NCBI RefSeq assembly: GCF_028641065.1
Contig: NC_073400.1
Location: 29,636,001 to 29,700,000 of the forward strand
DNA: 64,000 nucleotides
Direction: 5' to 3'
DNA from: Leucoraja erinacea
Taxonomy: Eukaryota
The position numbers were made by a program, and so were the translations under genes. Each line of letters opens with the position of its first letter. Within the stretch, counting starts at the first letter, position 1. Positions 30,410-59,610 of the stretch are shown in pieces. The notes beneath the pieces are model-generated. The model searched no databases. It saw nothing but the letters and a program-made list of their open reading frames with translations, and was not told where the DNA came from.

Positions 30410-30458
30410 ATGAAATATATTCATTTTACTCTGTTCCTGACCACCTTTTCATTGGCAG
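30410..30458 (+). CDS. Gene 2 exon 1, signal peptide MKYIHFTLFLTTFSLA
   Basis: atcATG, basic N-terminus plus hydrophobic core, CAG|GTAAG phase-1 donor. Confidence 0.8.
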
Positions 30459-33400
30459 GTAAGCAAAACTATTTGATTATGTTTTATGTAGGAAGGAACT
30501 GCAGATGCTGGTTTAAACCGAAGATACACACAAAATGCGAGAGTAACTCAGCGGGACAGGCAGTATCTCGGGAGAGAAGGAATGGGTGACTTTTCCGGTC
30601 GAGACCCTTCTTCATAACAAATTATGTTTTATTTCAACTATCATTCACTCCAGTTTAGTTTAATTTAGTTTAGTTTGCAGATAGAGCCCTTCGGGAAACA
30701 AGCCCTTTGGCCCACGGAGAGGAATGTTAAGGAAAATTTGATTTTATATTGTAACTTTAATAAACTTCAATTTCTTGAGACTTATTAAATTATTTTAAAA
30801 ATAAAGCCATTGATGTCAAGGAACATTGCCACAACATTCAAAGCTTCCACAAGCAACAACATAATCATCATTATTCAGTGATTAAGGCTGAGAAATAAAT
30901 ATTGTCCTTCTCTAGAAAGAGTACGTGCTGCAGCAGGTACGTGGCAGAAGAAATAGGTATTAGGAGGAGCTCTAATTAAACAGAGAACTTTGCCTTTAAG
31001 GGCACTACACCCTAAAAAATATACTTGTAGTTGTACTCTTTCAGGCATATAATGTTTAGTTTAGTTGAACTAAACACTACATGCCTGAAAGAGTACAAGC
31101 GTGGAAACAGGCCCTTCTGCCCACCGAGTCCACGGCAACCAGTGATCATCCGCACACTAGTTCTATCCTACAAGCTGGGGACAATTTGCACAAGCCAATT
31201 AAACCTACAAACCTGCATCTCTTTAGAAAGTGGTAGGAAACCGGAGTACCCAGAGAAAACCCACACGGCCACAGTGAGAGTGTACAAACTCCGCACAGAC
31301 AGCACCCGCAGTCAGGATCGGACCCGGAACTCTGGCGCTGTAAGGCAGCAACACTCTCATTGCAATGTTCATGTATTTTGTGTTTTATGACCGTTTCCTT
31401 GGTGTATCCCTTAATTGGTATATGTGACAATAAACTGACCTTGAAACCTTGAACTAAACTAAACCAAGCCCTCTTTTAGAAATTAGTTGAGTCTTGATCC
31501 TGGTGCGAATCATTGGGTTGTGAATACAGAAGAAGCAGAACGCATTTAAACCTCAGTGCATTGGCATAAGCTTGTGGGATAGGTATTATCTACAGAACAT
31601 GACCCTGTCTCTAAATATTTAACCATAGTGCCCTTGGTTAGGAAACAAACAACTCCCTCGATAGACTTTAAACGGCATTTTTGGGAAGTTTACCAGCAAC
31701 TGGTTTCACAATCATTGCTGGTGTTTCTATTATCTTTAAGCTGCTGGGACCCGACACATTTAATGACCCCCCCCACCCGCCCACCCCCACCCACAACCTT
31801 CCACTTCTCTTCCTCTGAGATACTTAGTATGTTCACTATGATAGCACAAGATGGCGGACTGCAGGGGTGATGCGCCGTTGTGTATGGCTGCTCCGCCTGC
31901 AGTCCGTCCTTTCACCCTTTTTTATTTTTATTTTTAGTCCTGTCACTACAAAATGTTTGTTGGAGGTCTTCTTTTATGTGGTGGGTGGGGGGAGGGGAAG
32001 GGGGAAACTATTTTAATCCCAGTCCTACCTGGTCGGAGATGCGGTTTTCCTCCGAACCGCATCTTCGTCCTCTCTGTGCGGCCTACCATCGAGCTGGAGC
32101 AGCGCTGGAGCGGCGTTTCCTGCCGGGACTACAGCTTCGCCGGTGGTGCAAATGCTGGGACACCAACACGGAGCGGGCGATGCCTTACCGGGTCGCCTTG
32201 CGGTAAGCTCCGGGGCACTGTGAACGCCGACTGCAACATCGTTGAGCTGCGGCTGCAGAGCGTCCAGCCGCGGGCGGGCGGCACTGGATTTAAAACACCG
32301 CGGAGCCTGGGATCCGGGATCGCCAGAGTCGGAGGTCCAGCCGGCGCGGCCTGAGAACTTTGGACAATGCAGTCTTCGGGGAGGAAGCGGCCGCTTCAGT
32401 CCAAGCCGCTGAAGGATGTTCACCCGACGCCGATGATCCAGCTTTGCGGCAGGAGGGCCTGAAAACACCGGGTTGGCTGAGGAGGCCACATATAGACCCC
32501 GACCTCGGGTGGACTATGAGGAGGAGAACTGGATATTTTTAGTGCCTTCCCTCACAGTGAATTCTGCTGTGAGGGGACGTTTCTTGTTGATTTCTGTAGT
32601 GTACTGTTCTTTTTTCTTTTTTCTTTTTCTTTTTTATTTTATATGGATTTATTGACATTTAATCTATTCAATTAGTTTAATCAATCTCTGTAAAGCACTT
32701 TGGTTCAAAGTGATTTTGTTTAAAAGTGCTATATAAATAAATATTATTATTATTATTATTATTACTATGACAAAGCCTTATAGTACAGCCCCTTACAACA
32801 GTGTTTACATTTATACGATACAATAGGAACTTTATTTTTCACAGGAGGGAAATAGATCTGCCAACGGTCATAAAACTCCGACCATCGATTACCCATACAC
32901 TAGAAATAGAATCAGAAATACACCATGGAAACAGGTCCTTCGGCTCAAGTTGCCCACCCCGACCAACATGTCCCATCTACACTCCTCCCACCTTCCTCCA
33001 TTTGGCCCATATCTCTCGAAACGTGTACTATCCATGTACATGTCTAAATGTTTCTTAAACATTGCGATTGTTTCTGCACAGACAGTACCCGTAGTCAGGA
33101 TCGAACCTGGGAAGCGGGGACCAGTCCCTTCATAGCTGGTGGAGAGTATCTGCTGGAATCGGATAGAAATTGATGACATGTCGATGCCAAGACAAACTGT
33201 GAAGTCCCGATTCAGCTAACATGCCTAAAGTCAATCCTCCAGGTCATCTGTACAAACGCTGGCCTCATGTACGATTATTATTACCAACTTTGGGTTGTCA
33301 GGAATGGCTCAGTGCAGGAAGCCACCATTAAGTTGGGGGAGTCCAGAACCAGAAGTCACAGTTTAAGAATAAGGGGTAGGCTATTTAGGACTGAGATGAG

Positions 33401-36400
33401 GAAAAACCTATTCACCCAGCGAGTTGTGAATCTATGGAATTCTCTGCCACAGAAGGCAGTGGAGGCCAATTCACTGGGTGTTTTCAAGAGAGAATTAGAT
33501 TTAGCTCTTAACAGAATCAAGTGATAAGGGGGAAAATCAAGAATATAGTACTGATTCTGGATGATCAGCCATGATCATATATTGAATGGCGGTGCTGGCT
33601 CGAAGGGCATGTGTATGTGCATGCATATGTGCGTGTTTGTGTCCATGCATGTGATGTGCATGTTTTTGTATCGTACGTGTATTTGTGTATGTGTGCATGT
33701 CCGTGTCCATTTGTGTATGCCTGGATGTCACTTTTAATGGGATAGGTTGGGCTGAAGGGCCGCTTTCAGCGCTGCATGACTCTATGGACTCCAAGACCAT
33801 AAAAAGAAGGAAGACAGTGCAAAGAAAAAACCAAGACAACAAAATAAGACATTAGTGCTCGTCCTCTGATGACCTCCAAGCGTTTTGCTGGACAGAGTAA
33901 TTGCCAACTGTGCTTTGTACTTACAGCTGCATTAACTGGGCCGAAGCTAGTGTCCGGGACCTTGGGAGGAGCCGTTACCATAAGATGCCAGTATCATGCA
34001 TATTACAAGTATCATGAAAAGTACTGGTGCAAGGGTTCTGATTGGAAATCCTGCAGTGTTCTGGCCAATTCTGCAAGCCAACATAAAAACATTGATGATA
34101 GAATAAGAATGGTGGACAACCAAACTGCTGGAGAATTTATCACTAAAGTGACCCAACTCTCTGCCAACGACACTGGGCTTTACTGGTGCGGCATTGTGCA
34201 ACTCGGCTATGACAGAATGGTTCCAGTGCGACTGAACGTTACAGAAGGTAAGATCAATCTTAATTTCTTCCTGATGAGATGTTCCCATATACTCAGACCA
34301 AATGGGGTGTAGACACAAGGAACTGCAGATGCTGGTTTACTAAGGAAAGACACAAAATGCTGAAGTAGCTCAGCAGGTCAGGCAGCATCTCTGGAGAAGG
34401 GTCTCGATCCGAAACTTCACCTATTCCTTTTCTCCAGAGATGCTGCTGAGTTACTCCAGCTGTTTGAGCCTATCGGTGGAGAACGTGAAGAGGTGATGTT
34501 TCGGGTCGGGAAGAAGTCATTTTAGACGGTTTGCATGATGCGTGCATTAATGTGTTTGGTGAAGTGCATAGTTAACAGTCGGAATTATGCTCAATGAAGC
34601 ATTCACATATTATTTATGCTTCAAATAGTCACAAACTAAACATAGAAAATAGGTGCAGGAGTAGGCCATTCGGCCCTTCGAGCATGCACTGCCATTCAAT
34701 ATGATCATGGCTGATCATCCAAATCAATATCCTGTACCTGCCTTCTCTCCATACCCCCTGATCCCTTTAGCCACAAGGGCCACATCTAACTCCCTCTTAA
34801 ATATAGCCAATGAACTGGCCTCAACTACCTTCTGTGGCAGAGAATTCCAGAGATTTACCACTCTCTGTGTTAAAAATGTTTTTCTCATCTCGGTCCTAAA
34901 GGATTTCCCCCTTATCCTTAAACTGTGACCCCTTGTTCTGGACTTCCCCGACATCGGGAACAATCTTCCTGCATCTAGCCTGCCCGACCCCTTAAGAATT
35001 TTGTACGTTTCTATAAGATCCCCCCTTAATCTTCTAAATTCTAGCGAGTACAAGCCGAGTCTATCCAGTCTTTCTTCATATGAAAGTCCTGACATCCCAG
35101 GAATCAGTCTGGTGAATCTTCTCTGTACTCCCTCTATGGCAAAAATGCCTTTCCTCTGGTCTGTAATTCCCCGTTTTTTCTCTCCCTCCCTTTTTAAAAA
35201 GTGGGGTTACATTAGCTACCCTCCAATCCTCAGGAACTACTCCAGAATCTAAAGAGTTTTGAAAAATTATCACTAATGCATCCACTATTTCTGGGGTTAC
35301 TTCCTTAAGTACTCTGGGATGCAGCCTATCTGGCCCTGGGGATTTATCGGCCTTTAATCTGCCACCTAACACCACTTCCTGGCTAACTTGGATTTCACTC
35401 AGTTCCTCCATCTCATTTGAGTCCCGGTCCCCTGCTATTTTCAGCAGATTATTTATGCCTTCCTTAGTGAAGACAGAACCAAAGTAGTTATTCAATTGGT
35501 CTGCCATGTCCTTGTTCCCCATGATCAATTCACCTGTCAATTCAACATATTCAGCAATCAAGACATGATATATACCACAATGACATACAGCAAAATTATA
35601 ACACAGTGTCTCAACTCTTTTTACACGTTGCAATGAATGCAATTTCTATTATTTATTTCCACTTCCAAACAAATATGTGGTTGGATTATTCAGCGTATGA
35701 TCAACGTGTGTCAATAAATCCTGGACCATGGTAACATATATGCTTAACCATGCACACTACAGATTGATGCAAGCATGGTTTCTGTGAAGGACCAAAAATT
35801 ATCATGACATGGCCATTGCATGGGTCGTTATTGCTATTGGTACAGAAATACTCTCGCTTCCCACATAATTTATCCACAACAAAATATACAGGTTGCAAGG
35901 ACATTTTTATGATAACAGCTGTTAAAACCGACTATACCCATCTGACAGGTTAAACATTACACTAACTGACAAGAGATGGCCAAAGGACTTCAAATGCAGC
36001 AAATGTTCTTTTGACAACATGTTTAAAGTTGTCAAAATGCCACGGTAGCAGTGACAATTGAACACTGCAGTTTTAATGTTTCACTGGTTCACAATTTAAT
36101 TAATCCATCATTATAGATTAAAACAAATAATAACATTAAAAATTAAAACACATTTGACTGCATTCCATTATCAAACATTGTCATTGTCGGTGCGGGATGG
36201 ATAGATGGGGTCTTTGAGAAGGCAATCAGTGCAGAATGGATGGAGTGAGGCAGGGGGATTAGTGCGTATTGGTTGAGTAGATAAAATTGTGAGGGGAGAG
36301 TGCAGGAGATGTCAGTGGGGGAGTACGGGATAGATGGGGTAATCAGTACCTGATGGATGGGGGGGGGGGGATCAGGGGGCAGTGCAGGATGAATGTGTGG

Positions 36401-39400
36401 ATCAGTACAGGATGATGATGGGGGGTGGGTCAGCATAGTGTGGATCGGGGGGTCTGTGCGGGATGAATGGGGAAATACAGTGCAGGATGGAGGGGAAGGG
36501 GGTCAGTACAGGATGAATTGGGGGACCAGTGTAGGATGGGGGGGGGGGGGGCAGGATAATCAATGCGAGGTGGATAGGAAGACCGGTGCAGGATAAATAG
36601 ATGGGGGGGGGGGGGGGTAGATGGGGAGGGGAGCACAGGGGGTAGATGGGGAGGGGAACACAGGGGGTGGCAGTGAGGACTGAATATATGGGGAATTTGA
36701 ATCAGTGTGGGGTGGAGAGGGTTGGTCCCAGGATAAGGGGGGGGGGGCGTACGAGAGAGAGAGGGGGGAAGGGGCAGAGGAGGAAGGTCAGCGCTCCTCG
36801 GACAACACCGGCATCATCGCCCCGCAGCCCGTCCCTGCCCACCGCCAAAGGGGGAGGTAGTTGGTCCGCTTCCACTCCTCCGCCAGCTAACAGGAAGGTG
36901 CGGGGCCGAGCGGTGCAGGTGCTTCAGAGCAAAGATACTAAAGGAGGCTCCTCTAGTATCATTGCTTCAGACAGCGGAAGGAGGCCTCCCCCTTCTTTCC
37001 TCCTTCCCTCCCTCCTCGGCATGGAGGGTTTGTTTTGAAAGCGGTTATCGCCGTTGGCGTAGTGGCACTCAGCAGGCAGGGTGCAGAACGAAGTGCGGGG
37101 CCCGTCATTCACTCCGATAAACTAAGGCGATGGTGAGGTGCGAGGGCCCGGCGGGGGGGAGCGCGGGCACGCGACGAGGGATCTCCCTTTTCCCCCCCAA
37201 ATCATCCCGCGGGTCGGATTGGACCCTTCGAGGGTAGTTTAAAACCCCGATATAAAACAAACAGACCCCCCCTCCCCGCAACGTAAAGCAACGCAATATT
37301 CCACGGTTCTACTCACACAGACTAGGCCCGGAGCATCGAGGCGTTGCATTTAAAATGGCGGCGATCTGATCCCGCCCACTGCGCACGCGCGGAGAGCCGG
37401 CGTCATTGTGCGTCGTATGTCACTAGCTACTGCGTCTTTGTCACCCACTTCTGCGTCGCTTTTTGTCACCAGCTTCCCCCACCACTCCCGCCCCCCCCCC
37501 CCACTGCGAAGGCGCGGATGGTCGCAAATCTACTTTTCAAATCATCCCGCGGGCCGGAACCAGAATTTCGTGTAATTTTTTTTTTCCCGCTGAATTTTTT
37601 TTACTCTGGAAAAAATGGGGATGCGGTCGCACCCAAAGCACCCCCCCCCCGCCCCCCTTATAGCGGAGCTATAAGATCTTTGCTTCGGTCGGCCATGAGG
37701 GTGGGCCGAAGGGCCGGTTTCAGCGCTGCACTGAACTCCACGACCGTAACTGAACTCCACGACAGTGACTGTGACTCCACGACCGTAAAACGAAGGAAGA
37801 CAGTACAAAGAAAAAAACAAAATAAGACATTAGTGCTCATCCTCTGATGACCTCCAAGCGTTTTGCTGGAATCTGAGTAATTGCCAACTGTGCTTTGTAC
37901 TTACAGCTGCATTAACTGGGCCGAAGCTAGTGTCCGGGACCTTGGGAGGAGCCGTTACCATAAGATGCCAGTATCATGCATATTACAAGTATCATGAAAA
38001 GTACTTGTGCAAGGGTTCTGATTGGAAATCCTGCAGTGTTCTGGCCAATTCTACAAACCAACATAAAAACATTGACGATAGAATAAGAATGGTGGACAAC
38101 CAAACTGCTGGAGAATTTATCACTAAAGTGACCCAACTCTCTGCCAATGATACTGGGCTTTACTGGTGCGGCATTGTGCAATTCGGCTATGACAGAATGG
38201 TTCCAGTGCGACTGAACGTTACAGAAGGTAAGATCAATCTTAATTTCTTCCTGATGAGATGTTCCCATATACCCAGACCAAATGGGGTGTAGAAACAAGG
38301 AACAAGGAAATGCAGATGCTGGTTTACTAAGGAAAGACACAAAATGCTGAAGTAGCTCAGCAGGTCAGGCAGCATCTCTGGAGAAGGGTCTCGATCCGAA
38401 ACTTCACCTATTCCTTTTCTCCAGAGATGCTGCTGAGTTACTCCAGCTGTTTGAGCCTATCGGTGGAGAACGTGAAGAGGTGATGTTTCGGGTCGGGAAG
38501 AAGTCATTTTAGACGGCTTGCATGATGCGTGCATTAATGTGTTTGGATGAAGTGCATAGTTAACAGTCGGAATTATGCTCAATGAAGCATTCACATATTA
38601 TTTATGCTTCAAATAGTCACAAACTAAACATAGAAAATAGGTGCAGGAGTAGGCCATTCGGCCCTTCGAGCATGCACTGCCATTCAATATGATCATGGCT
38701 GATCATCCAAATCAATATCCTGTACCTGCCTTCTCTCCATACCCCCTGATCCCTTTAGCCACAAGGGCCACATCTAACTCCCTCTTAAATATAGCCAATG
38801 AACTGGCCTCAACTACCTTCTGTGGCAGAGAATTCCAGAGATTTACCACTCTCTGTGTTAAAAATGTTTTTCTCATCTCGGTCCTAAAGGATTTCCCCCT
38901 TATCCTTAAACTGTGACCCCTTGTTCTGGACTTCCCCGACATCGGGAACAATCTTCCTGCATCTAGCCTGTCCGACCCCTTAAGAATTTTGTAAGTTTCT
39001 ATAAGATCCCCCCTTAATCTTCTAAATTCTAGCGAGTACAAGCCGAGTCTATCCAGTCTTTCTTCATATGAAAGTCCTGACATCCCAGGAATCAGTCTGG
39101 TGAATCTTCTCTGTACTCCCTCTATGGCAAAAATGCCTTTCCTCTGGTCTGTAATTCCCAGTTTTTTCTCTCCCGCCCTTTTTAAAAAGTGGGGTTACAT
39201 TAGCTACCCTCCAATCCTCAGGAACTACTCCAGAATCTAAAGAGTTTTGAAAAATTATCACTAATGCATCCACTATTTCTGGGGTTACTTCCTTAAGTAC
39301 TCTGGGATGCAGCCTATCTGGCCCTGGGGATTTATCGGCCTTTAATCTGCCACCTAACACCACTTCCTGGCTAACTTGGATTTCACTCAGTTCCTCCATC

Positions 39401-48400: not shown

Positions 48401-51400
48401 TGTGCAGCTGTTGCTGTTAATGCATGGATGAAAGCGCCAAGCATCTCCTGCAGCAGCACGGTGGTGCAGTGGTAGAGTTGCTGCCTCACAGCGCCAGGGA
48501 CCCGGGTTTGAACCTGACTACGGGTGCTGTCTGTACGGAGTTTGTACATTCTCCCTGTGACCCCTTTAGTTTTCTCTGCGTGCTCCGGCATCCTCTACCA
48601 TCCCAAAGACGTGCAGGTGTGTAGGTTAATTGGCTTCTGTAAGTTGTCGCTAGTGTGTAGAGAGTTGATGAGAAAGTGGGATAACATAGAACTAGTGCGA
48701 ATGGATGATGGCTGGTTAGCACGAACTAGGTGGGCCGAATAGCCTGTTTCCATACTCTATCGCCAAACCGAACTAACCTAAACTAATGTTTAAGATGGGA
48801 CTGCAGATGCTGGAAAATCGAAGATAGACAAAAATGCTGCAGAAACTCAGTGGGCGAAGCAGCATCTTTGGAGCGAAGGAAATGGGTGATGTTTCGGGTC
48901 GAGACCCTTTTTTTAGACTAAGGAAATAGGCGACGTTTCGGGTCGACACCCTTCGGGTCTCGACCCGAAACGTCGCCTATTTCCTTCGCTCCATATTTGC
49001 TGCCTCACCCGCTGAGCTTCTCCAGCGTTTTTGTGTAACCTAAACTAATATCAATTTGTTGTACTAACTGATTACAGAATCGCAGGATTATTACATAGAA
49101 ACATAGAAACATAGAAATTAGGTGCAGGAGTAGGCCATTCGGCCCTTCGAGCCTGCACCGCCATTCAATATGATCATGGCTGATCATCCAACTCAGTATC
49201 CCGTACCTGCCTTCTCTCCATACCCCCTGATCCCCTTAGCCACAAGGGCCACATCTAACTCCCTCTTAAATATAGCCAATGAACTGGCCTCAACTACCCT
49301 CTGTGGCAGAGAATTCCAGAGATTCACCACTCTCTGTGTGAAAAAAGTTCTTCTCATCTCGGTTTTAAAGGATTTCCCCTTTATCCTTAAGCTGTGACCC
49401 CTTGTCCTGGACTTCCCTAACATCGGGAATAATCTTCCTGCATCTAGCTTGTCCAACCCCTTAAGAATTTTGTAAGTTTCTATAAGATCCCCTCTCAATC
49501 TTCTAAATTCTAGAGAGTATAAACCAAGTCTATCCAGTCTTTCTTCATAAGACAGTCCTGACATCCCAGGAATCAGTCTGGTGAACCGTCTCTGCACTCC
49601 CTCTATGGCAATAATGTCCTTCCTCATATTTGGATGGTGTAAAACATCTTAGGAAATGACTGTTCAGCCCATCTAATCTCTACTAGCTCTGTGTTGGAGC
49701 AACCCAGTTGGTCTCACTATCCTTCACTCTCCACGGATCCCGGCAAACTTTTCGTGTTTAAGTATCTACCTGGTTCCCCTTCGAACACTTTCATTCCATC
49801 TGCCTCCACTGTTTCCGCACTGTATCTCTAAACTAAATTAAACCACTCACCTCTGGTATTGGCCCAAACCACAAGCTATTTTAAAATGAACTTCCCCATG
49901 TTACTTTCAGTTACTCTTTTATTGCCAATTGAAAATAAAAATAAAGTTTTAAATAGGAAGTATAACAACCTGCAACAAACTATGGTGTAAATATGATTCT
50001 ATATTTAAACTGAGTTGCCGCTCATGTAGATTCCTAGGGGGAACTTCATTCTAAGGGTGAATATTACTCAGGGCTTCCTCTCTTGATTGCTCTCTAATAA
50101 CTTGCTCAATTGTGTTTCCGTAGGAACATGAACGATGTGGAGGTTTGCAAACATCTAAAGCTGAATGGAGACAGAAGGAACTGCAGATGCTGGAATCTTG
50201 AATAAGATGAAAAGTGCTGGAGCAACTCAGCAGGTCAGGCAGCAACTGAGGATAGACAATGGATAGACAATGTTTTGGGTCAAGACTGCAGTTTTGGGGT
50301 TCCACGTGTCTCCTGACCCACTGAGTTACTACGGTAACTTACTCTCAATTCCAGCATCTGCAGTTCTTTGTGTCTCAATCTTAAGCAGGGTCCCAACCTG
50401 AAACATCGCCAATTCATTCCTTCCACAGATGCAGCTTGGCCCATTGAGTTACTCCAGCACTTTGTGCTTTACTAAAGCTGATCTTGACCCAAAACATTGT
50501 CTATCCATTGTCTATCCTCAGTTGCTGCCTGACCTGCTGAGTTGCTCTAGCACTTTTCATCTTATTCAAGATTCCAGCATCTGCAGTTCCTTCTGTCTCC
50601 CTTCAGCTTTAGCAGTTTGCAAACCTCCACATCGTTCATGTCCCCATGTGACTTGTGTATGTACCTGGTGTTGGGTATATAGTTAGTGTCTGGGGGTCTG
50701 CATCCCGCAAACATCAGTGGTTTTAGCAACAGATGCTAGCAATGCTAGCATTTATTTCAAGAAGGCTAGAATACAAAGACAGAGATATAATGCTGAGGCT
50801 CTATAAGGCGCTGGTAAGGCCGTTTTTGGAGCATGGTGAGTAATTTTGGGCACCGTATCTGAGGACGGATGTGCTGACTCTGGAGAGGGTCCAGAGGAGG
50901 TTTACAAGAATGATCCCAGGAATGAGTGAGTTATGAATGAGCGTTTGACAGCGTTGGGCCTGTACTCGCAAGAGTTTAGAAGAATGAGGGGGTATCGCAT
51001 TGAAACATACAAAATAATGAAAGGCTTGGATAGAGTGGATGTGGAGAGGATGTTTCCACTAGTGGGAGAGTCTAGGACTAGAGGTAATTGCCTCAGAAAT
51101 AAAGGACGTTCTTTTAGGAAGGAGATGAGGAGGAATTTCTTTAGTCCGTGGAGGACGTCAATGGATATTTTTAAGGCAGAATTAGATAGATATATTCTTG
51201 ATTAGTACGGGTGTCGGGGGTTATGGGGAGAAGGCAGGAGAATGGGGTTAGGAGGGTGAGATAGATCAGCCAGGATTTAACGGCGGAGTCGACTTTATGG
51301 GCCGAATGGCCTAATTCTGCTCCTGTCATTTATGACATGATCTAACAGAAATGGGAATAGAAAATTGAAAAACGTAAGAAACAACAAGTATGAAAATTGG

Positions 51401-54400
51401 CTTGGGATAATTAAATTTTGCTTTTATTTTATTCCCACAGTTCCGTAAATATATCCATTCTTCTGGGAAGCATATTTGGAGTTTTGATTGTTTTGATTGT
51501 TACTGCTGTTTTTGTCATAAAATGCAGGAAATATTCCGCAGCGGGTAAGTGACGCAACTTTAAACATTCCATTTGTACATGAGAAAACTTTCTACATCCA
51601 GTGGATGAGCTGAAGAGGGAAATGTGGAATTCTCCAGAAACCTCTCCCATTCCTTCAGTTCTAACCCTACAATAGTCGAGAGTGTTTTATTGTCATATGT
51701 CCCAGATAGAACAATGAAATTCTTACTGCAGCACAACAGAATATGTATTCATAATAAATAATATAACAAAAACTCAGAAAAAAAACCCCAAACAATAACA
51801 GTGCAATAATAATAATAATAATAGTCTATTGTAGTTCAGAGTGTATGAGGTTGTAGTGTTTAATAGCCTGATGGCTGCAGGGAAGAAGCTGTTCCTGAAC
51901 CTGGACGTTATAATAATAATAATAATAAATTTTATTTTTGGGCGCCTTTCAGAAATCTCAAGGACACCTTACAGAGATTAACAGGAATAAAAAACGTATA
52001 ATCAGAATAAAATAAATAATAAAGACATCACAGAAACACAAATTAAAAACAGAATTCAGTCCAAAAACAAAAAATCAAAAACACAATGTGAAAAAGAGAG
52101 CAGCGGCAGCTAAAGCGCGCCAACGTCCACTCTCCCTTCCGACAGCCATCTTTGCACAAAGACTAACAGGATTACTTACAGACAAAAAAAAATCATCCCC
52201 CCACAATGGATACCACTGTGGGGGAAGGCACAATGTCCAGTCCCCAACCCCAAGTTCACCCAAAGTCAGGCCTATTGAGGCCACCGCAATTGCCTCTACG
52301 GAGGCCCGATGTTCTGGCCGTTCTCACCGTGTGATCTTGCCCCAGCGTCGGGAGAGTCCTCTCAGCGGCTGGGCCACTTGGAACGGCCGCTTCCTAGCTG
52401 GAGACCGCGGCTTCCGAAGCCGACAAGGCCGCGCCGGCCTGGAGCTCCCAGGCTCCCGATGTTGAATTCGGCGCCGCCTGCTCCGCTCTGCAGACCCGCA
52501 GCCCGGAGGTGTCGAACACGGCGGACACAGCTCACCGGAGCTCCAGCACGGCGACCCAGACAAGGCACCGCCCGCTCCGCGACAGCGCCCCGGCGCTGCG
52601 CCACCACCGAGGCCGAGGTGCTGGGCAGTCCCCGCCAGGAAACGGCGCTCCAAGCCTGCTGGTAGGCCACGAGGCCGGTCGACGGGCAGCCCAGAGAAAA
52701 AGCTGCCTCACCGACCAGGTAGGGACCTAGAAGTAAAATTGCCTCCAACCCCCCACATTAAAAAGTCAATTTCTCCAACGGACGAAACACAGGACTTACT
52801 AAAAATATTTTATTTTAAAAAAAGCAAAGTAAACGGACGGCTGCTGGTTAGCAGCTGCTCCCCAAGATGGCTCCTCACATTCCCAAGTTCTAGTTATAGT
52901 TCTCAGGCTCCTGTACCTTCTTCCCGATGGCAGTGGTGAGATGGCCAGGATGGTGTGGGTCTTTGATGTAGTTGGCTGTCTTTTTGATGACGATAGATCA
53001 GACGATAGCGCCCTGGCGAGGAAAAGACTACAAAAAGTAGGAAACACTGCCCAGTCCATCATCGGCTCTGACCTCCCTGCCATCGAGGGGATCTATCGCA
53101 GTCGGTGCCTCAAAAAGGCTGGCACTATCATCAAGGACCCACACCATCCTGGCCACACACTCATCTCCCTGATACCTATAGGTAGAAGGTACAGGAACCT
53201 GAAGACTGCAACGACCAGGTTCAGGAATAGCTACTTCCTCATCTCCGTTCTAAATGGCCTACCCCTTATATTTAAAATGTGGCCCCTGGTTCTGGACTCC
53301 TCCAACATAGGGAACATGTTTCCTGCCTCTAGTGTGTCCAATCCCTTAATAATCTTCCATGTTTCAATAAGACACCCTCTCATCCTTCTAAAGTTTAGGG
53401 AGGAAACGGGAGCACCCGGAGAAAACCCACACGGTCACGGGGAAAACATGCAAACTGATGTGTTAATACTCAGATTATTTGTGTTTTCAATAAAATTAGG
53501 ACATGGATCATGTGGGGCAAATAGTAATCAATTCACCTTGGCTAACGACCTCATATATCCTCAAGCCAAGTTAAGAGTATTTAATTATCAAATATATTGA
53601 AAACAGAACAATGAAATTCTTGCATGCAGCAGCTTAACAGACCCTTCAGAGAGAACAGGGAAAGCCTAAGTTACTTGTCTCATCCGACAGCATCTCCAAC
53701 AATAATTCAGTGCTTGAGTTCCACGCTGAATGGTTAGACACGATCTTTGTGTTCGACTCATATGGCAGTGGGATTTGAACCCCCCCAACCTCTGGCTCAC
53801 AGTGTCACCAGCTGAACGCCAGCTGACACCTGCAGGAATCTATGGAGAGGCTGCACTCGAGACGAACAATGAATAAGAATATGCCCTGACACTACAGACT
53901 CGAATCGAGCAATAGACAGAGAACAATATACAATGCTGTACATACAAGACACAAGTATGCACAAGGACAGTAACATAACGTTCCAATCATAGGAGTGATA
54001 AAATAGGTCCTGTGTGTGTGACATTCATTCAAGTCCATCCTCCATCACCACAGTATGGTTCAATTATTCATTTACTGAATTATTAAATCAGTACCAAGAG
54101 CAAGAGGAGCCATTTTGGTGTTTTCAGGTGGATTAAAGACAGGCTGACATTTAAAAAAAAATAGCAATCCTACAGTGACACATGATGTGCTTGGATGTGT
54201 TTTAAAGGGACATCTTCTGAGATATAATGTTTTCTTGCTGTTTAGTTTAGTTTAGAGATACAGCCATAAGCCCACCGAGTCCAACCAGCGTACACTAGTT
54301 CCATCCCACACACAAGGGACAATTTACAGAAGTCAATTAACCTACAAACATGCACATCTTTGGAGTTTGGTTTAGTTTAATTTAGTTTAGTTTGGAGATA

Positions 54401-55437
54401 CAGCGTGGAAACAGGCCCTTTCGTCCCACCGAGTCCTCACCAACCAGCGACCACCCCCTACACTAGTTCTATCCTACACACAAGGGACAATTTCCAGAAG
54501 CCAATTAACGTACAAACCTGCACATCTTTGGAGTGTGGCAGGAAACCAGAGCACCCGGAGAAAATCCACGCAGGTCACGGGGAGAACGTGCTAACTCCGT
54601 ACAGACAGCACCCGCAATGAGGATTGAACCCGTGTCTCCGGCGCTGTAAAGCAGCAACTCTACCGCTGCACCACTGTGCTGCTTTAAAGAAAAAAATTAC
54701 CTTTCAGTCGACTTGCTTATTGCAAATGTCAAAACACACTGCAGACAACTATTCATTAAAATATGTACTGCAACGGATTAATTTTTAGTCGTATTACTGC
54801 AATCTATTTCTTTATCATCCTTAGGGAAGAAAGGAATCGGTCACAAAGAAGAAGAATATAATGCTGTCTGCAATTCTGTGGTAAGGAATTCTCATCTGAT
54901 GTCTGTCTGATACAAGATACAAGATACAAGATACATTTAATTGTCATTTGGACCCCTTGAGGTCCAAACGAAATGCCGTTTCTGCAGCCATACATTACAT
55001 TACAAACACATAGACCCAAGACACAACATAATTTACATAAACATCCATCACATCGCTGTGATGGAGGCCAAAAAAACTTATCTCCCCCCTGCCCTCTCCC
55101 CCCCCCCCCCATGTCAGAGTCAAAGTCAAAGCCCCCGGCTGGCGATGGCGATTGTCCCGCGGCCATTAAAGCCACGCCGGGTGGTGCGAGGTCGCACACC
55201 GGGTCTTGCTGTTAGAGCCCCCGGCGTGCGCTCGCAGAGTCCCGCGACCATTCCAAGCCGCGTGGGGCAGTGATGTAGGCCCCGCTCCAGGAGCTCTTCA
55301 ACCCCGCAACTCGGGCGGGAGAAGTCGCCGTTGCGGGAGCCCTGAAAAGCGGTCTCCCTCCAGGGAGCCGCGGGCTCCCGGTGCCGCCGTCCACAGACCT
55401 GCCGTTGGAGCCTCCGACTCTCCGTTAGCAGCAGCAG

Positions 55438-55469
<32 letters not shown>

Positions 55470-58104
55470 GCGCTCCTCCACCTCTCCACCCGCTCCGGAC
55501 TCGGCCAGCCCCACGACGGCGACGGTGAGTCGTAGCACCAGAGTCCCCGGCTTCTTCCTGTTGGAGGCCGCTCCTCGTTGCGGCCCCAACGACAACGGAA
55601 ACCCGACGAGAAAAGGTCGGGTCTCCAGTGCAGGGAGAGATTTAAAAAGTTTCCCCCCCCCCCCCACCCCCCCACCCCCCCACACACACACACCCCAACA
55701 AAAAATAACAAAAACTAAAATAAAACACAGACAGAAAATAATAAAACGCGGACAGACTGCAGAGGCCGCTGCTGACCAGAGTCGCGCTGCCCACCGGCAA
55801 TGATCATTAATAGAATGTGTCTCTATGCTATCGCTTGGATATTTATTTATCCGATGTATTCTATACAATATTATTCCACATAATCCACAAAACGCCAAGT
55901 ACAATCTGGGCGCATGTGAGTGCCCAAGGGTTATGGGGATCAGATGGAGTTGGTGTATAAGATTAAAAATTCAGATCACAGAACAGTACAGCACAGGAAC
56001 AGGCCCTTCGGCCCACAATGTCTGCAGTTTAGTTTAGTTTATTTTAAAGATACAGTGTAGAAACAGGCACTTCGGCCCACCGAGTCCGCGCCGACCAGCA
56101 ATCCCCGCACACTTACACTATCCGACACACACCAGGGACAATTTACAATTTCACGAAGCCCATTAGCGTACAAACCTGTACGACTGTGGAGTGCTGGAGG
56201 AAACCGTAGCTCCCAGAGATAACCCACGCAGGTCACAGGGAGAACGTATAAACTCCATACAGACAGCACCCATAGTCAGGATCGAACCCGGGTCACAGGC
56301 GCTGTAAGGCAGCAAATCTACCGCTGCGCCACCGTGCCGCCCCTGTACTGACAATGATAGTGAGACTAACCCCTTTCTGTCCGCACATAATCAGTATCCC
56401 TGCATATCCATGTGCTTGTCCAAGTGTCTCTTAAATGCCACTTTCATAATCTGCCTCCACCACCATCACACACAGCTGTGCAAACCAGTCACCCACCTAT
56501 GTGTAAAAAAAAAGTAAACTTGGGCCTTACATGTCCTTTAAAGATTGCCCCAAACACCTTAAAGCAATGCTCTCCAGTCTGGGGAAAAAGGTTTCTGGCT
56601 GTCTCCCCTCTCAATGCCGCTCATAGTTTTATATAGGTCTCCCCTCAACCTTCGGCATTCCAGAGAACACATGGCAGATCTGTCGTAAAGAGGCAGATCA
56701 TCTCCTTAGCTTCTACTTGTTGTTATCTTATGATGAGCATGGTTCAGTTACAACGTGTCACAGGGTCATCTTCATATATTCACATTATAACAGAAGTACA
56801 ATATAGTCCTGTTTTAATCTAAATATATGCACAGAGTCTCTTGCCCAGAGTGGGTGAATTTGTGGCCCAGAGGACATAGGTTTAAGGTGATGGGAATCTG
56901 AGGAGTAACTATTGAAGTAGACCATTATTATTATTGCACTATATTTGTTTATTTATTGAGTGTGTGTGTATGTGTGTATATATACATACTGAAGTTTTTT
57001 TTTTCTCCCATTATGTACTATGTTTCCATATTCTGTTGTGCTGCAGCAAGTAAGAATTTCATTGTCCTATCTGGGACATATGACAATAAAACACTCTTGA
57101 CTCGTGAACTTTTTTAAACAAAGGGTGGTGAGTGTATGGATCGAGCTGCCAGAGGAAGTAATTGAGGCTGGGACTATCCCAACATTTAAAAAAAGGTTAG
57201 ACAGGTTTGGAGGGTTATGGACCAAGCGCAGGCAGGTGGGACATGTTGGCTGGTGTGGACAAACTGGGCCGAAGGGCCTGTTTCGACACTGTATCACTCA
57301 CTCTATATAAAGATGGCTCGTTGGCAAATTGTAACTGAACCATGCTAATCATTAAAAAAATAACATAAAGTACAATATAGTCCTTTGTGCAAAATGTACA
57401 GCTAATCCATTTCATTTATTGTTCCAATTAAATCAATAGACAATAGGTGCAGGAGTAGGCCATTCGGCCCTTCGAGCCAGCACCGCCATTCAATGTGATC
57501 ATGGCTGATCACCCCCAATTAGTACCCCGTTCCTGCCTTCTCCCCATATCCCCTGACTTCACTATTTTTAAGAGCCCTATCTAGCTCTCTCTTGAAAGCA
57601 TCCAGAGAACCTGCCTCTACCACCCTCTGAGGCAGAGAATTCCACAGACTCCGTTTCGTCTCCGTTCTAAATGGCTTACTCCTTATTCTTGAACTGTGGC
57701 CCCTGGTTCTGGACTCCCCCAACATCGGGAACATGTTTCCTGCCTCCAGCGTGTCCAAGCCCTTAACAATCTTATATGTTTCAATGAGATACCCTCTCAT
57801 CCTTCTAAACTCCAGAGTGTACAAGCCCATGATTATAACAAGAATTAAAAGAGAGCCATATTCAGCATTCTGTGGTGGAATCAATAAAAGATTTAAATTT
57901 GTTTTGGCTTAAAGATCGACGGATGACATACTGTTTAACAATAACATTTTGACCTTCTTTTGAAAGTCTTCCAGAGATGACGAAGAAGGTAAATTAAGTG
58001 ACACGACCACGGATAAATCCAGCACTCAGACACAAGAAACCTTCCGCGATATTCATCAGACACCAGACCACGAAGAGAAGGAGAATCTCTCGTGCCAGAA
58101 TTGA
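30410..58104 (+). CDS. Gene 2: CD300/pIgR-like receptor with four tandem IgV exons; join(30410..30458,33927..34247,37907..38227,41833..42153,45749..46069,47226..47292,51441..51544,54825..54880,57967..58104), 565 aa if all four are included (244 aa with one)
   Basis: All junctions are GT-AG and in phase (1698 nt including stop); same exon order and phases as gene 1; I found only one leader and one stalk/TM/tail set for four Ig exons. Confidence 0.75.
31845..32765 (+). mobile_element. ~0.9-kb CpG-rich non-coding retroposon-like element
   Basis: Starts caagatggcgg, ends tgtaaagcactttg..aataaataa(tat)n; flanked by actatga direct repeats. Confidence 0.65.
33927..34247 (+). CDS. Gene 2 IgV exon copy 1
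   Basis: ttacAG acceptor; AALTGPKLVSG...TIRC...KYWCKGSDWKSC...DTGLYWCGIVQLGYD...LNVTE; AAG|GTAAG donor; 321 nt. Confidence 0.93.
34639..35537 (-). mobile_element. CR1 LINE 3' fragment with internal deletion (array unit 1)
   Basis: Peptides KSPGPD..HPRVLKE..WRVANVTPLFKKG..GNYRP and LSYEERLDRLGLYSLE..RGDLIE..; tail toward 34639; deletion junction near 35156. Confidence 0.9.
35538..37682. repeat. Unclassified ~2.1-kb segment (AT-rich part, G/purine-rich low-complexity part, CpG-rich end with terminal hairpin); also 39530..41610 and 43445..45524
   Basis: Recurs in all three units; ends CTTATAGC-GGA-GCTATAAG-ATCTTTG; probably transposon-derived, family unknown. Confidence 0.55.
37907..38227 (+). 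CDS. Gene 2 IgV exon copy 2 (KYLC variant)
   Basis: Intact 321-nt frame and both splice sites; Trp->Leu at 38005..38007. Confidence 0.85.
38627..39529 (-). mobile_element. CR1 LINE fragment (array unit 2)
   Basis: Copy of 34639..35537. Confidence 0.9.
41833..42153 (+). CDS. Gene 2 IgV exon copy 3 (KYLC variant)
   Basis: Intact 321-nt frame and both splice sites; Trp->Leu at 41931..41933. Confidence 0.85.
42546..43444 (-). mobile_element. CR1 LINE fragment (array unit 3)
   Basis: Copy of 34639..35537. Confidence 0.9.
45749..46069 (+). CDS. Gene 2 IgV exon copy 4
   Basis: Intact 321-nt frame and both splice sites; KYWC retained. Confidence 0.92.
46267..46865 (+). mobile_element. CR1 3' fragments bounding the right end of the array
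   Basis: RRTFFTQRVVNLWNSLP peptide; (tttctatg)n tail. Confidence 0.85.
47226..47292 (+). CDS. Gene 2 stalk exon DPTTQPPTISPELQETAHHGNQ
   Basis: tttttcAG acceptor, AAG|GTAAC donor, Pro/Thr-rich, phase 1 to 2 as in the gene 1 stalk. Confidence 0.8.
48456..48785 (+). mobile_element. tRNA-derived SINE (HE1/V-SINE-like)
   Basis: Same head, core and tail. Confidence 0.85.
49094..49630 (-). mobile_element. Young CR1 LINE 3' end
   Basis: Uninterrupted 144-aa ORF2 C-terminus (IEGVQRRFTRLIPG..LWNSLP..) plus (catagaaa)3 tail. Confidence 0.92.
50126..50641. repeat. Local inverted duplication, 160-bp arms (50126..50285, 50482..50641), 196-bp spacer
   Basis: Arms are reverse complements with about 4 mismatches; ORFs 50051..50305(-) and 50429..50686(+) give the same peptide. 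Confidence 0.92.
50742..51340 (+). mobile_element. CR1 LINE 3' fragment
   Basis: MLRLYKALVRP..LERVQRRFTRMIPG..GLYS.EFRRMRG.. with frameshifts. Confidence 0.85.
51441..51544 (+). CDS. Gene 2 transmembrane exon SVNISILLGSIFGVLIVLIVTAVFVI-KCRKYSAA
   Basis: ttcccacAG acceptor, hydrophobic uncharged helix plus basic cluster, CGG|GTAAG donor, phase 2 to 1. Confidence 0.88.
51912..52890 (-). mobile_element. ~1-kb CpG-rich retroposon-like element inserted in a Rex1-like fragment
   Basis: (taa)n tail at the left, gttata direct repeats; interior similar to 1580..2410. Confidence 0.65.
53005..53236 (+). mobile_element. Rex1/Babar-like LINE ORF C-terminal fragment
   Basis: RKRLQKVGNTAQSIIG.DLP.IE.IYRSRCLKKA..IIKDPHHPGH...GRRYR.LKTATTRFRNSYF. 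Confidence 0.75.
54825..54880 (+). CDS. Gene 2 cytoplasmic exon GKKGIGHKEEEYNAVCNSV
   Basis: ccttAG acceptor, GTG|GTAAG donor; 56 nt, phase 1 to 0; begins xKK and ends NSx like gene 1 exon 5. Confidence 0.78.
54908..55800 (-). mobile_element. CpG-rich retroposon-like element with (gatacaa)n tail and internal (CAG)n
   Basis: Tail at 54908..54934, GC-rich body, microsatellite at 55427..55471. Confidence 0.55.
56027..56342 (-). mobile_element. tRNA-derived SINE (HE1/V-SINE-like); further copies near 3820, 11055, 13888, 14410, 19125, 22760, 31060, 47382, 54370, 60395, 62100
   Basis: (gttta)n tail then the reverse complement of the SINE core and tRNA head. Confidence 0.85.
57435..57830 (-). mobile_element. 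CR1 LINE 3' fragment
   Basis: GLYTLEFRRMRGYLIETYKI.. plus (caataga)n tail. Confidence 0.85.
57967..58104 (+). CDS. Gene 2 terminal exon SSRDDEEGKLSDTTTDKSSTQTQETFRDIHQTPDHEEKENLSCQN*
   Basis: cttcttttgaaAG acceptor; first 24 residues align ungapped to gene 1 exon 6 (7 identities). An alternative AG 8 nt downstream would give an immediate stop. Confidence 0.62.
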   Translation, partial: SSRDDEEGKLSDTTTDKSSTQTQETFRDIHQTPDHEEKENLSCQN

Positions 58105-59099: not shown

Positions 59100-59610
59100 A
59101 CATAGAGTGACACAGTGTGGAAACGGGCCCTTCAGCCCAACTTGCCCACACCAGCCAACTTGTCCCAGGCTAGCTACACTAGTCCCACCAGGCCCATATC
59201 CCTTGAAACCTGTCCTATCCAAGTACCCTATCTAACTGTTTCTGAAACGTCAGGATAGTCCCTACCTCAACTACCTCCTCTGGCAGTTTGTTCCATACAT
59301 CCACCATCCTTGGTGTGAAAAAGTTACCCCTCAGATTCCTATTGAATCTTTTCCCCTTCACATTACACCTATGTTCTCTGGTCCTCGATTCCCTTACTCT
59401 GGGCAAGAGACTACGTGCATCTACCCGATCTATCCCTCTCGTAATTTTATACATTTCTATGAGATCACCCCTCATCCTCCTGTGCTCCAAGGAATAGAAT
59501 CCCAGCCTACTCAACCTCTCCTTATAGCTCAGACCATGTAATCCTGGCAACATCCTCGTAAATCTTCTCTGTACCCTTTCTAGCTAGACAACATCTTTCC
59601 TATAACACGA
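59100..59610 (-). mobile_element. CR1 LINE 3' fragment (second subfamily)
   Basis: LPGLHGLSYKERLSRLGFYSLEHRRMRGDLIE..WNKLPEEVVE. Confidence 0.85.

Follow-up and report, generated by a model that had tools for sequence, protein, structure and literature searches.

A recent tandem array of four V exons in a CD300-like receptor gene of the skate Leucoraja erinacea

The gene and its exons

The window (the whole stretch of DNA analysed, 64,000 nt in length) contains two adjoining paralogous genes of CD300 type on the same strand. One of these (8823–25740) encodes a protein with the ITIM sequences VTYATV and LEYSTI. The other, located 3′ to it, is the subject of this analysis, and comprises nine exons:

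30410–30458, forward strand: leader exon, with the ATG and the signal peptide MKYIHFTLFLTTFSLA, ending in phase 1 with the donor CAG/gtaagc; residues 1–17 of isoforms X1 and X2
33927–34247, forward strand: V exon 1 (W33, A49 S50, L92)
37907–38227, forward strand: V exon 2 (L33, T49 N50, F92)
41833–42153, forward strand: V exon 3 (L33, A49 N50, F92), differing by 1 nt from exon 2
45749–46069, forward strand: V exon 4 (S25, W33, S82, F92)
47226–47292, forward strand: stalk exon, DPTTQPPTISPELQETAHHGNQ, entered in phase 1 and left in phase 2; present in spliced RNA contigs
51441–51544, forward strand: transmembrane exon, with the uncharged segment ILLGSIFGVLIVLIVTAVFVI; absent from RefSeq isoform X2
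54825–54880, forward strand: cytoplasmic exon, GKKGIGHKEEEYNAVCNSV
57967–58104, forward strand: last coding exon, SSRDDEEGKLSD...LSCQN and stop, lacking an ITIM

Local translation of the nine spliced exons gives a protein identical to RefSeq XP_055510909.1 (isoform X1, 565 aa), so that the four-domain gene model of the original prediction agrees exactly with what is itself a predicted protein. Omission of the transmembrane exon gives XP_055510910.1 (isoform X2, 478 aa). The gene is therefore already known, as the L. erinacea ‘polymeric immunoglobulin receptor-like’ record; this is a prediction, both isoforms having been built by the NCBI pipeline with four V exons. No description of the gene was found in the literature searched. 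The expectation of one gene, with a single leader, four intact V exons and a single set of stalk, transmembrane and tail exons, is borne out by the exon model. The positions of the four 321-nt V exons, their intact splice sites and their phase 1-1 boundaries proved exact in the window; the leader ends at 30458, not 30459 as first read. The units were said to contain neither a leader nor a transmembrane segment of their own, and a tblastn search using full-length relatives found no leader-like or transmembrane-like sequence within them.

All four V exons are open in frame starting at base 3. All four share an identical 20-nt stretch ahead of the acceptor AG and an identical 10 nt of intron following the donor. 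Each exon encodes a V-set domain (Pfam PF07686, E = 3e-14 to 2e-11), and the pattern TIRC...(W/L)CKGSDWKSC...LYWCG is present in 4/4 copies, giving the canonical B–F disulfide and a second, C–C′ (CX7C) disulfide. It had been proposed that any subset of the V exons could be spliced in frame, leading to a four-domain protein, a ladder of one to four domains or use as cassettes, all of which are predictions. With phase 1-1 boundaries in four out of four exons the first point stands, but nearly every Ig-domain exon is phase 1-1, and the property does not set this gene apart.

The product is predicted to be a type I membrane receptor. There is no signalling signature: the transmembrane segment is uncharged, and the tail has neither an ITIM nor any match to (I/V/L/S)xYxx(I/V/L). 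The tail of ∼72 aa contains a single tyrosine motif (EEEYNAV, a YxxV motif) that is poorly conserved among the orthologues; pIgR has a long tail with transcytosis and endocytosis signals. When the transmembrane exon is skipped the frame of the cytoplasmic exon changes, placing a stop at 54859–54861, and isoform X2 is predicted to be soluble.

The tandem array and its origin

The V exons lie within a tandem repeat:

33787–46272, forward strand: tandem array, three full units of ∼3.93 kb and the first ∼0.66 kb of a fourth (∼0.17 unit)

Each unit begins 140 nt 5′ of a V exon. The array begins in the tail of a TE, with a 19-bp repeat, and ends inside a MITE-like element beside LINE fragments. An Rfam search found nothing in the units; the sole match is a tRNA in the neighbouring gene. 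A repeat outside the array (29702–29975 and 59170–59443) was considered as a shared promoter, and is instead a dispersed element. The units differ from each other by 1.2–1.75% in substitutions, and the V exons by 0.3–2.2% pairwise. Nine of the 321 positions of the V exon are variable, six of them non-synonymous and three synonymous, approximately the proportion that neutral change would give. The copies thus seem to have drifted at an approximately neutral rate, with no clear division of labour. Four of the six replacements fall in CDR-like loops; a claim of selection from this was dropped as too small and post hoc. The W33L change in exons 2 and 3 was likewise rejected as a sign of decay, as L33 is common in batoid and shark relatives.

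Copies as alike as these might arise in an assembly, with one V exon becoming four through mis-assembly or the placing of haplotypes in tandem, and noisy CLR reads with polishing were used here (PMC10115646). Yet 47–68 substitutions and several indels separate any two units, and the array of 12.5 kb is shorter than the PacBio read N50 of 29 kb (PMC10115646). In a short-read DNA run (X1) the V-exon contig has a k-mer depth of 119.3, compared with 20–35 for six single-copy contigs, i.e. ∼4.4 times the single-copy depth. Expansion by the assembly, which the depth check could have revealed, is therefore not borne out. Several variant types of the V exon are moreover present in independent samples, and an artefact is very improbable.

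The orthologues of Amblyraja radiata (241 aa) and Rhinoraja longicauda (242 aa) have matching leader, stalk, transmembrane and tail sequences with one V domain, and those of Pristis, Mobula and Narcine also have one V each; these are gene models, and collapsed assemblies could produce single-V forms. The domains of the array gene (D1–D4) are 95–99% identical to each other and 82–85% identical to the Amblyraja V domain. The low divergence of the units, together with the single V of other skates and rays, supports the proposed origin of the array by recent amplification of an exon. By this account an ancestral single V exon and ∼3.6 kb of the intron downstream were copied in tandem very recently, in this lineage only, giving four intact V exons in a gene of the CD300/CMRF35-like cluster of L. 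erinacea. Relatives from Hemitrygon and Scyliorhinus torazame are annotated with 2–3 near-identical V domains, and these stingray and catshark duplications arose independently.

The V-set scores, and a best single-domain PDB match to chains of CD300f/CLM-1 (E = 2.6e-20, residues 2–104), place the domains in the CD300/pIgR-type family, as was thought. pIgR has four tandem domains in birds and amphibians, five in mammals and two in teleosts. The RefSeq name would make the array gene the cartilaginous-fish orthologue of pIgR, which would fit its four V domains in tandem, each having the extra CX7C disulfide, and solved pIgR chains are the top PDB match by summed score (E = 4e-39 over several domains). 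But that score is a sum of repeated matches, and a single domain of CD300f scores better than D1 of pIgR (E = 4.5e-9). The four domains are only a few per cent old, the orthologues are single-V and named CMRF35-like, and in one survey (PMC4016189) no pIgR was found among cartilaginous fish. Orthology with pIgR can hardly be correct; the array gene is CD300-like. The pIgR-like architecture that had been suggested is then only a convergent resemblance, given domains that are 95–99% identical and single-V orthologues. Both are type I membrane proteins in which CD300-type V domains are strung in tandem on a stalk, possibly with a soluble form; those of pIgR are old, divergent and distinct in their roles, whereas those of the array gene are near-identical and recent. 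We know of no immunoglobulin binding by the array gene product.

With the CD300/CMRF35-like proteins (mammalian CD300a–f and batoid ‘CMRF35-like molecule 1/5’) the gene shares a V-set domain with both disulfides, the order of leader, V, stalk, transmembrane segment and short tail, and a location beside an ITIM-bearing paralogue. It differs in having four V exons rather than the one of the CD300 layout, which is found in the five other batoid orthologues, and in lacking an ITIM or a charged transmembrane residue. The sequences of XP_055510909.1 and XP_055510910.1 are identical to those derived here, and their automated name hides both the CD300-like nature of the gene and its young exon array. 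Members of the skate modular domain immune-type receptor (MDIR) family vary in domain number. The MDIRs are likewise a skate multigene family with CD300/TREM/pIgR-like V domains (PMC3031540); in the array gene it is a duplication inside a single gene, no more than 1–2% old, that has altered the number of domains.

V exons in RNA

The contigs assembled from RNA contain the 3′ end of a V exon spliced to the stalk, transmembrane and cytoplasmic exons without a branch (X10 record 10 and X6 record 23), the transmembrane exon being spliced on both sides in each. A loose end in X10 after 51549 reads into the cytoplasmic exon at 54825–54880. In X6 two V variant contigs, with depths of 2.39 and 2.9, merge into a stalk-joined contig of depth 6.08. 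In each of the four RNA-derived ORFs P0166–P0169 a single V domain leads directly into the stalk. The V alleles of the sampled individuals differ from the reference. All the RNA evidence consists of assembled contigs of low depth (3–6× in organism A), which demonstrate presence rather than absence, and from which minor branches can be pruned.

If transcription starts at the leader promoter and all four V exons are joined one after another in the mRNA, the main product would be the 565-aa membrane receptor, accompanied by the 478-aa soluble form, and the repeated domains would add avidity. The strong splice sites are identical in all four exons, which also have uninterrupted ORFs and a symmetric phase, so that inclusion of V is the default; four strong acceptor/donor pairs, all of which would be used by default, count against an output of single-V RNA. 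RefSeq isoforms X1 and X2 each contain four V domains, and multiple V domains are annotated in the Hemitrygon and S. torazame relatives. The X9 RNA contigs contain more than one V variant type, with letters typical of exons 1 and 2 at 45895–45918 and 46024. Against this, no V-to-V joint was found in the RNA contigs, as judged from contig continuity and the flow of depth and not from the listing of joints, which was swamped by TE joints of the DNA run and in which neither a V-to-V back-joint nor the loose ends at 45749 and 46069 would appear. After the final 45 nt of V, common to all copies, the contigs continue directly into the stalk; with all four exons in series V-to-V joints would be three-fold commoner than V-to-stalk joints, and a branch would be expected. 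Each RNA sample has at most two variants per site. In a collection of 15 billion proteins all the RNA-derived ORFs are one-V, and none contains a V–V joint peptide; a search for homologues of a single V domain among candidates of 58–185 aa gave no match, and is uninformative on short junction fragments. The four-V protein is a prediction that we regard as possible, though somewhat doubtful as the main product.

In organism B the 5′ edge of the V exon is spliced (X10 record 9). In organism A the V exon continues unspliced into the upstream ‘intron’. No leader-to-V joint was seen in the organism A contigs either, which therefore do not sample the canonical mRNA. Mutually exclusive splicing of the V exons was judged unlikely; since the exons are divisible by three in length, NMD provides no constraint, and with introns of 3.6 kb there is no steric block.

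Taken as a whole, we consider with moderate confidence that this is a young V array in a CD300-like gene whose main output is RNA with a single V. In the RNA covered here each molecule has one V exon joined to the stalk, transmembrane segment and tail, and those of organism A either start within the CpG-island-like segment immediately 5′ of a V exon or retain it. The function of the receptor, like the predominance of single-V RNA, is something we infer.

CpG-island-like segments 5′ of the V exons

Three segments of 800 bp with the character of CpG islands, all with a GC of 0.56, are located before V exons 2–4, and only there:

37075–37875, forward strand: CpG-island-like segment at the end of unit 1, 5′ of V exon 2 (GC 0.56, CpG o/e 1.04, 65 CpG)
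41000–41800, forward strand: CpG-island-like segment 5′ of V exon 3 (CpG o/e 1.03), with an in-frame ATG at 41775
44915–45715, forward strand: CpG-island-like segment 5′ of V exon 4 (CpG o/e 1.06)

The flanks and the gene's own upstream region have values of 0.42–0.52. The CpGs of the segments are not decaying, with CpG transitions accounting for one of 22 inter-unit differences over 61 CpGs. An ATG is found 58 nt 5′ of the V exons, in frame for reference exons 1 and 3 and out of frame for exons 2 and 4. The ORF from 41775 corresponds to the N-terminus of P0169, which begins at this upstream ATG and continues through V, stalk, transmembrane segment and tail. Two RNA contigs, X6 record 16 (starting at ∼45466) and X9 record 24 (starting at 45626), extend without a break from the upstream segment into the V exon, at a depth equal to that of the spliced downstream part; the unique introns have zero depth. 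The CpG-island-like character of the segment, its co-amplification before exons 2–4 and the RNA-derived ORF starting inside it give a hint of an internal promoter and of transcripts with a single V.

Each unit might accordingly carry a CpG-island promoter at which transcripts start, the upstream segment and V forming a first exon that is spliced to the shared stalk, transmembrane and tail exons. The in-frame upstream ATG (reference units 1 and 3, and the P0169 allele) would then provide a substitute signal peptide, MTSKRFAG(L/Q)SNCQLCFVLTA, with a hydrophobic core about as strong as that of the canonical leader. Candidate YY1-like, NRF1-like and GC-box motifs lie ∼100–200 nt 5′ of the RNA contig start; in the segment before V exon 2 the candidate YY1-like motif is AAAATGGCGGCG, at 37352. 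However, neither transcript start nor strand can be read from the contigs, and upstream-segment RNA could be mimicked by retention of the last V–V intron or by carry-over of genomic DNA, boosted by the four-fold copy number. The ATG is out of frame before reference exons 2 and 4, the latter being adjacent to the stalk, and the spliced V 5′ edge of organism B does not fit. Such promoter use is thus unlikely on balance, and it is correspondingly doubtful that the duplication copied a module of CpG-island promoter and V exon, making the locus a small variable/constant cluster. If internal promoters do hold, the arrangement of promoter plus variable exon with shared constant exons would be that of the variable-first-exon clusters of protocadherin alpha/gamma and UGT1A. 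RNA contigs and P0169 begin in the segments before exons 2–4, although contigs do not mark transcript starts. Unlike those clusters, the array V exons keep working acceptors behind a common leader, and their promoter use is deduced.

Iso-Seq, methylome and ATAC data for the little skate are public (PMC10115646). The locus provides a clean, datable case of the way in which multi-domain Ig receptors of the pIgR and MDIR kind can grow by tandem copying of phase 1-1 V exons, caught at 1–2% divergence, with sister skates that are single-V and with comparable events that took place in parallel in a stingray and in a catshark. A misleading database name is also put right, the gene being CD300-like and not a shark or skate pIgR. 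If the CpG-island-like segment does drive transcription, a cassette system of promoter plus exon would have been born in one step, and a protocadherin/UGT1A-style layout would be seen at its birth in an innate immune receptor.

Exon structure of the array gene and its neighbour

The CD300-like gene that carries the tandem array, hereafter the array gene, comprises nine exons within the window:

30410-30458, leader exon
33927-34247, V exon 1 (321 nt)
37907-38227, V exon 2 (321 nt)
41833-42153, V exon 3 (321 nt)
45749-46069, V exon 4 (321 nt)
47226-47292, stalk exon
51441-51544, transmembrane (TM) exon
54825-54880, cytoplasmic exon
57967-58104, last exon

When joined, the translation of these exons is exactly that of RefSeq XP_055510909.1 (isoform X1, 565 aa), so the 565-aa model of the original prediction is correct and is already present in public annotation. 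A profile-free search with one V exon against 1.8 billion representative proteins returned a protein of 478 aa with four matches at 97%; this is RefSeq XP_055510910.1 (isoform X2), in whose cluster isoform X1 also lies. Without the TM exon the following exon is read in a shifted frame, and the translation is then exactly that of isoform X2: 54825-54861 is read to a stop after 11 codons, leading to a four-V form predicted to be soluble. The stalk and TM contigs of RNA run X9 differ in depth (4.4 and 3.55 respectively), which hints at a branch at the TM exon. The TM segment of the array gene is uncharged, and there is no ITIM in its tail of ~72 aa.

The four V exons lie where they had been predicted. 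The 20 nt preceding the acceptor are identical in all four (…tgctttgtacttacag) and the donor context AAG/gtaagatcaa is common to them, so that all are phase 1-1, with the reading frame open from the third base. Ig exons in general can be interchanged in frame in this way. Each exon encodes a Pfam V-set domain, retaining the canonical cysteines and an extra CX7C pair, (W/L)CKGSDWKSC. The exons vary at only nine sites, three of which are silent while six are replacements (Y25S, W33L, A49T, S50N, T82S and L92F). W33L might be taken for a defect; this was rejected because leucine, rather than tryptophan, is the usual residue before the second cysteine in batoid and shark relatives.

A second CD300-type gene, gene 1, is located nearby:

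8823-25740 (+), gene 1: V exon 8823-9143, TM ~14881-14988, cytoplasmic exons ~19566 and 25552-25740
15103-15175 (+), tRNA-Lys within a gene-1 intron

The gene-1 V exon is 35% identical to the array V. Its tail contains two ITIM-type motifs, VTYATV and LEYSTI, and gene 1 is the inhibitory counterpart to the array gene, which has no ITIM. The tRNA-Lys (anticodon TTT; Rfam 74 bits) begins ~115 nt past the TM exon, and may be a gene in its own right or may head a tRNA-derived SINE.

The tandem array and its history

The V exons stand at the head of the units of a tandem array:

33787-46272, tandem array: three full ~3.93-kb units and the first ~0.66 kb of a fourth

Neither a leader- nor a TM-like sequence was found inside the units by tblastn with relatives. 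Between aligned units, substitutions amount to 1.2-1.75%, with some indels in addition, and the V exons differ by 0.3-2.2%; exons and introns have therefore changed at about equal speed. At its proximal edge the array lies inside a transposon tail bearing a 19-bp repeat, and the distal edge is within a MITE-like element adjoining LINE fragments. This palindromic element (GGAACTGCAGATGCTGGTTTA...) is found at 38304-38461, at 30493-30575 and at more than 10 other places in the window, one copy forming the array's distal breakpoint. It is flanked by LINE 3′ fragments (38626-39516 and 46264-46853, inverted; 49107-49625). Since the length of the array is not a whole number of units, a later rearrangement at its distal end is likely.

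Expansion of a single copy during assembly could give the same appearance, but three observations speak against it. In DNA run X1 (short reads, not to be confused with isoform X1) the k-mer depth of the V-exon contig is 119.3, against 20-35 in six single-copy contigs of the same 6 kb, a ratio of ~4.4 that is supporting only, as contig depth is not copy number. The assembly was made from PacBio reads with an N50 of 29 kb (PMC10115646), longer than the 12.5 kb of the array, and the units differ from each other at 47-68 sites each. A single gene with a young array of intact V exons, formed by exon amplification, holds at the DNA level.

RNA and DNA contigs of other samples (45673-46037) have mosaic V alleles that combine letters of different reference copies, e.g. 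S25 with L33, together with letters absent from all reference V copies (45836 G, 45887 T and 46019 C). The letters private to exon 4, G45995 and C45824, did not appear in most runs. The mosaic alleles and the letters outside the reference suggest gene conversion, unequal crossing-over or copy-number polymorphism.

The family of the array gene is known for variable domain number, and the number of domains varies between members of the skate MDIRs. The closest solved structures to a single V domain are those of CD300f/CLM-1 (E 3e-20 across the whole domain). pIgR was top-ranked only through the summing of several of its domains, and a survey reported none in cartilaginous fish (PMC4016189); a pIgR orthologue was rejected, and the array gene is CD300-like. 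The MDIRs of skates form a published multigene family whose V domains resemble those of CD300 and pIgR (PMC3031540). One protein named 'pIgR-like' by RefSeq (P0154, Mustelus asterias, 577 aa) aligns to a V domain, TM and ITIM tail of gene-1 type plus V domains of array-gene type, and may be a fusion of two adjacent genes by the annotation pipeline.

A single V domain, in a protein that shares the leader, stalk, TM and tail, is found in Amblyraja radiata (241 aa), in Rhinoraja longicauda (242 aa), and in proteins of Pristis, Mobula and Narcine that are all named CMRF35-like. The little-skate V domains are 95-99% identical to each other, compared with 82-85% for the V of Amblyraja and 78-80% for that of Rhinoraja, and they lie on very short branches within the skate group of the tree. 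On present gene models the amplification is, to judge from the high identity within the gene, the short branches and the one-V relatives, recent and specific to the Leucoraja lineage. Two V domains at 91% occur in Hemitrygon akajei, and D2 and D3 of Scyliorhinus torazame are 94% identical; these duplications are independent of the Leucoraja event.

V-exon junctions in the available RNA

The RNA data are contigs rather than raw reads. Runs X6 and X9 are from organism A, which is labelled as the species of the DNA run, and X10 is from organism B. In X10, record 10 (771 nt, depth 73) covers V from position 101 to its end, followed by 67 letters, which is the length of the stalk, and the TM exon, and then reads on into the cytoplasmic exon. 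Record 23 of X6 (318 nt, depth 6.1) contains the final 45 nt of V together with the stalk, TM and cytoplasmic exons and 46 nt of the last exon; it begins exactly past variable site 46024, where two variant contigs (2.39 and 2.9) join to form it. A single depth value of 4.4 applies to the X9 contig spanning 46037 and the stalk. From this continuity and merging, V 3′ ends pass into the stalk. Serial inclusion of four V exons would make V-to-V joints three times as common as V-to-stalk joints, which should break the contigs, yet no branch from a V 3′ end to another V exon or to an intron is retained in contigs of X6, X9 or X10. The available RNA points to one V per molecule, as judged from contig continuity and depth flow rather than from back-joint reads, at low depth in organism A and with contigs that can lose minor paths. 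The products put forward originally, whether a four-domain high-avidity receptor, a ladder or cassettes, are putative.

On the 5′ side, the sole organism-A contigs across the V edge (X6 record 16, starting at ~45466, and X9 record 24, starting at 45626) continue without interruption into the upstream 'intron'. Depth is zero in unique intron bins. No leader-to-V joint occurs among the organism-A contigs, so the canonical mRNA is unsampled there. The organism-B contig departs from the genome at 45746, and is therefore spliced there. Among the proteins derived from RNA, P0166, P0167 (nine contigs) and P0168 have a single V joined to stalk, TM and tail, and P0169 (247 aa) starts with MTSKRFAGLSNCQLCFVLT, which is what the 58 nt immediately before V exon 3 encode in frame. 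Neither a canonical leader at the start nor a V-V junction peptide is present in the open reading frames P0166-P0169.

The CpG-island-like segment and the upstream ATG

Each full unit ends in a CpG-island-like segment of ~800 bp, and an ATG is found 58-60 nt upstream of every V exon:

37075-37875, 41000-41800 and 44915-45715, CpG-island-like segments
33869 and 41775, upstream ATG in frame (exons 1 and 3)
37847 and 45689, upstream ATG out of frame (exons 2 and 4)

The segments have a GC content of 0.56 and a CpG observed/expected ratio of 1.03-1.06, compared with 0.42-0.52 in the flanks and in the upstream region of the array gene itself. CpG transitions account for 1 of 22 differences between units despite 61 CpGs, with no excess loss of CpGs between units, the pattern that an unmethylated island would show. 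The segment has been co-amplified with the V exon, being directly upstream of exons 2-4 and absent before exon 1. It holds AAAATGGCGGCG and TGCGCACGCGCG, which we take to be YY1-like and NRF1-like motifs respectively (unscored), and GC boxes, located ~100-200 nt ahead of the point where X6 record 16 begins.

In units 1 and 3 the upstream ATG reads through the acceptor to give a signal-peptide-like sequence, MTSKRFAG(Q/L)SNCQLCFVLTA, whose hydrophobic core matches the canonical leader's in strength; ahead of exons 2 and 4 a 2-nt insertion places the ATG out of frame. The N-terminus of P0169 matches this peptide exactly. The evidence favours an internal promoter making single-V transcripts, but falls short of proof. 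The upstream-initiated or intron-retaining RNA, together with the co-amplified CpG island, is the most promising part of the locus.
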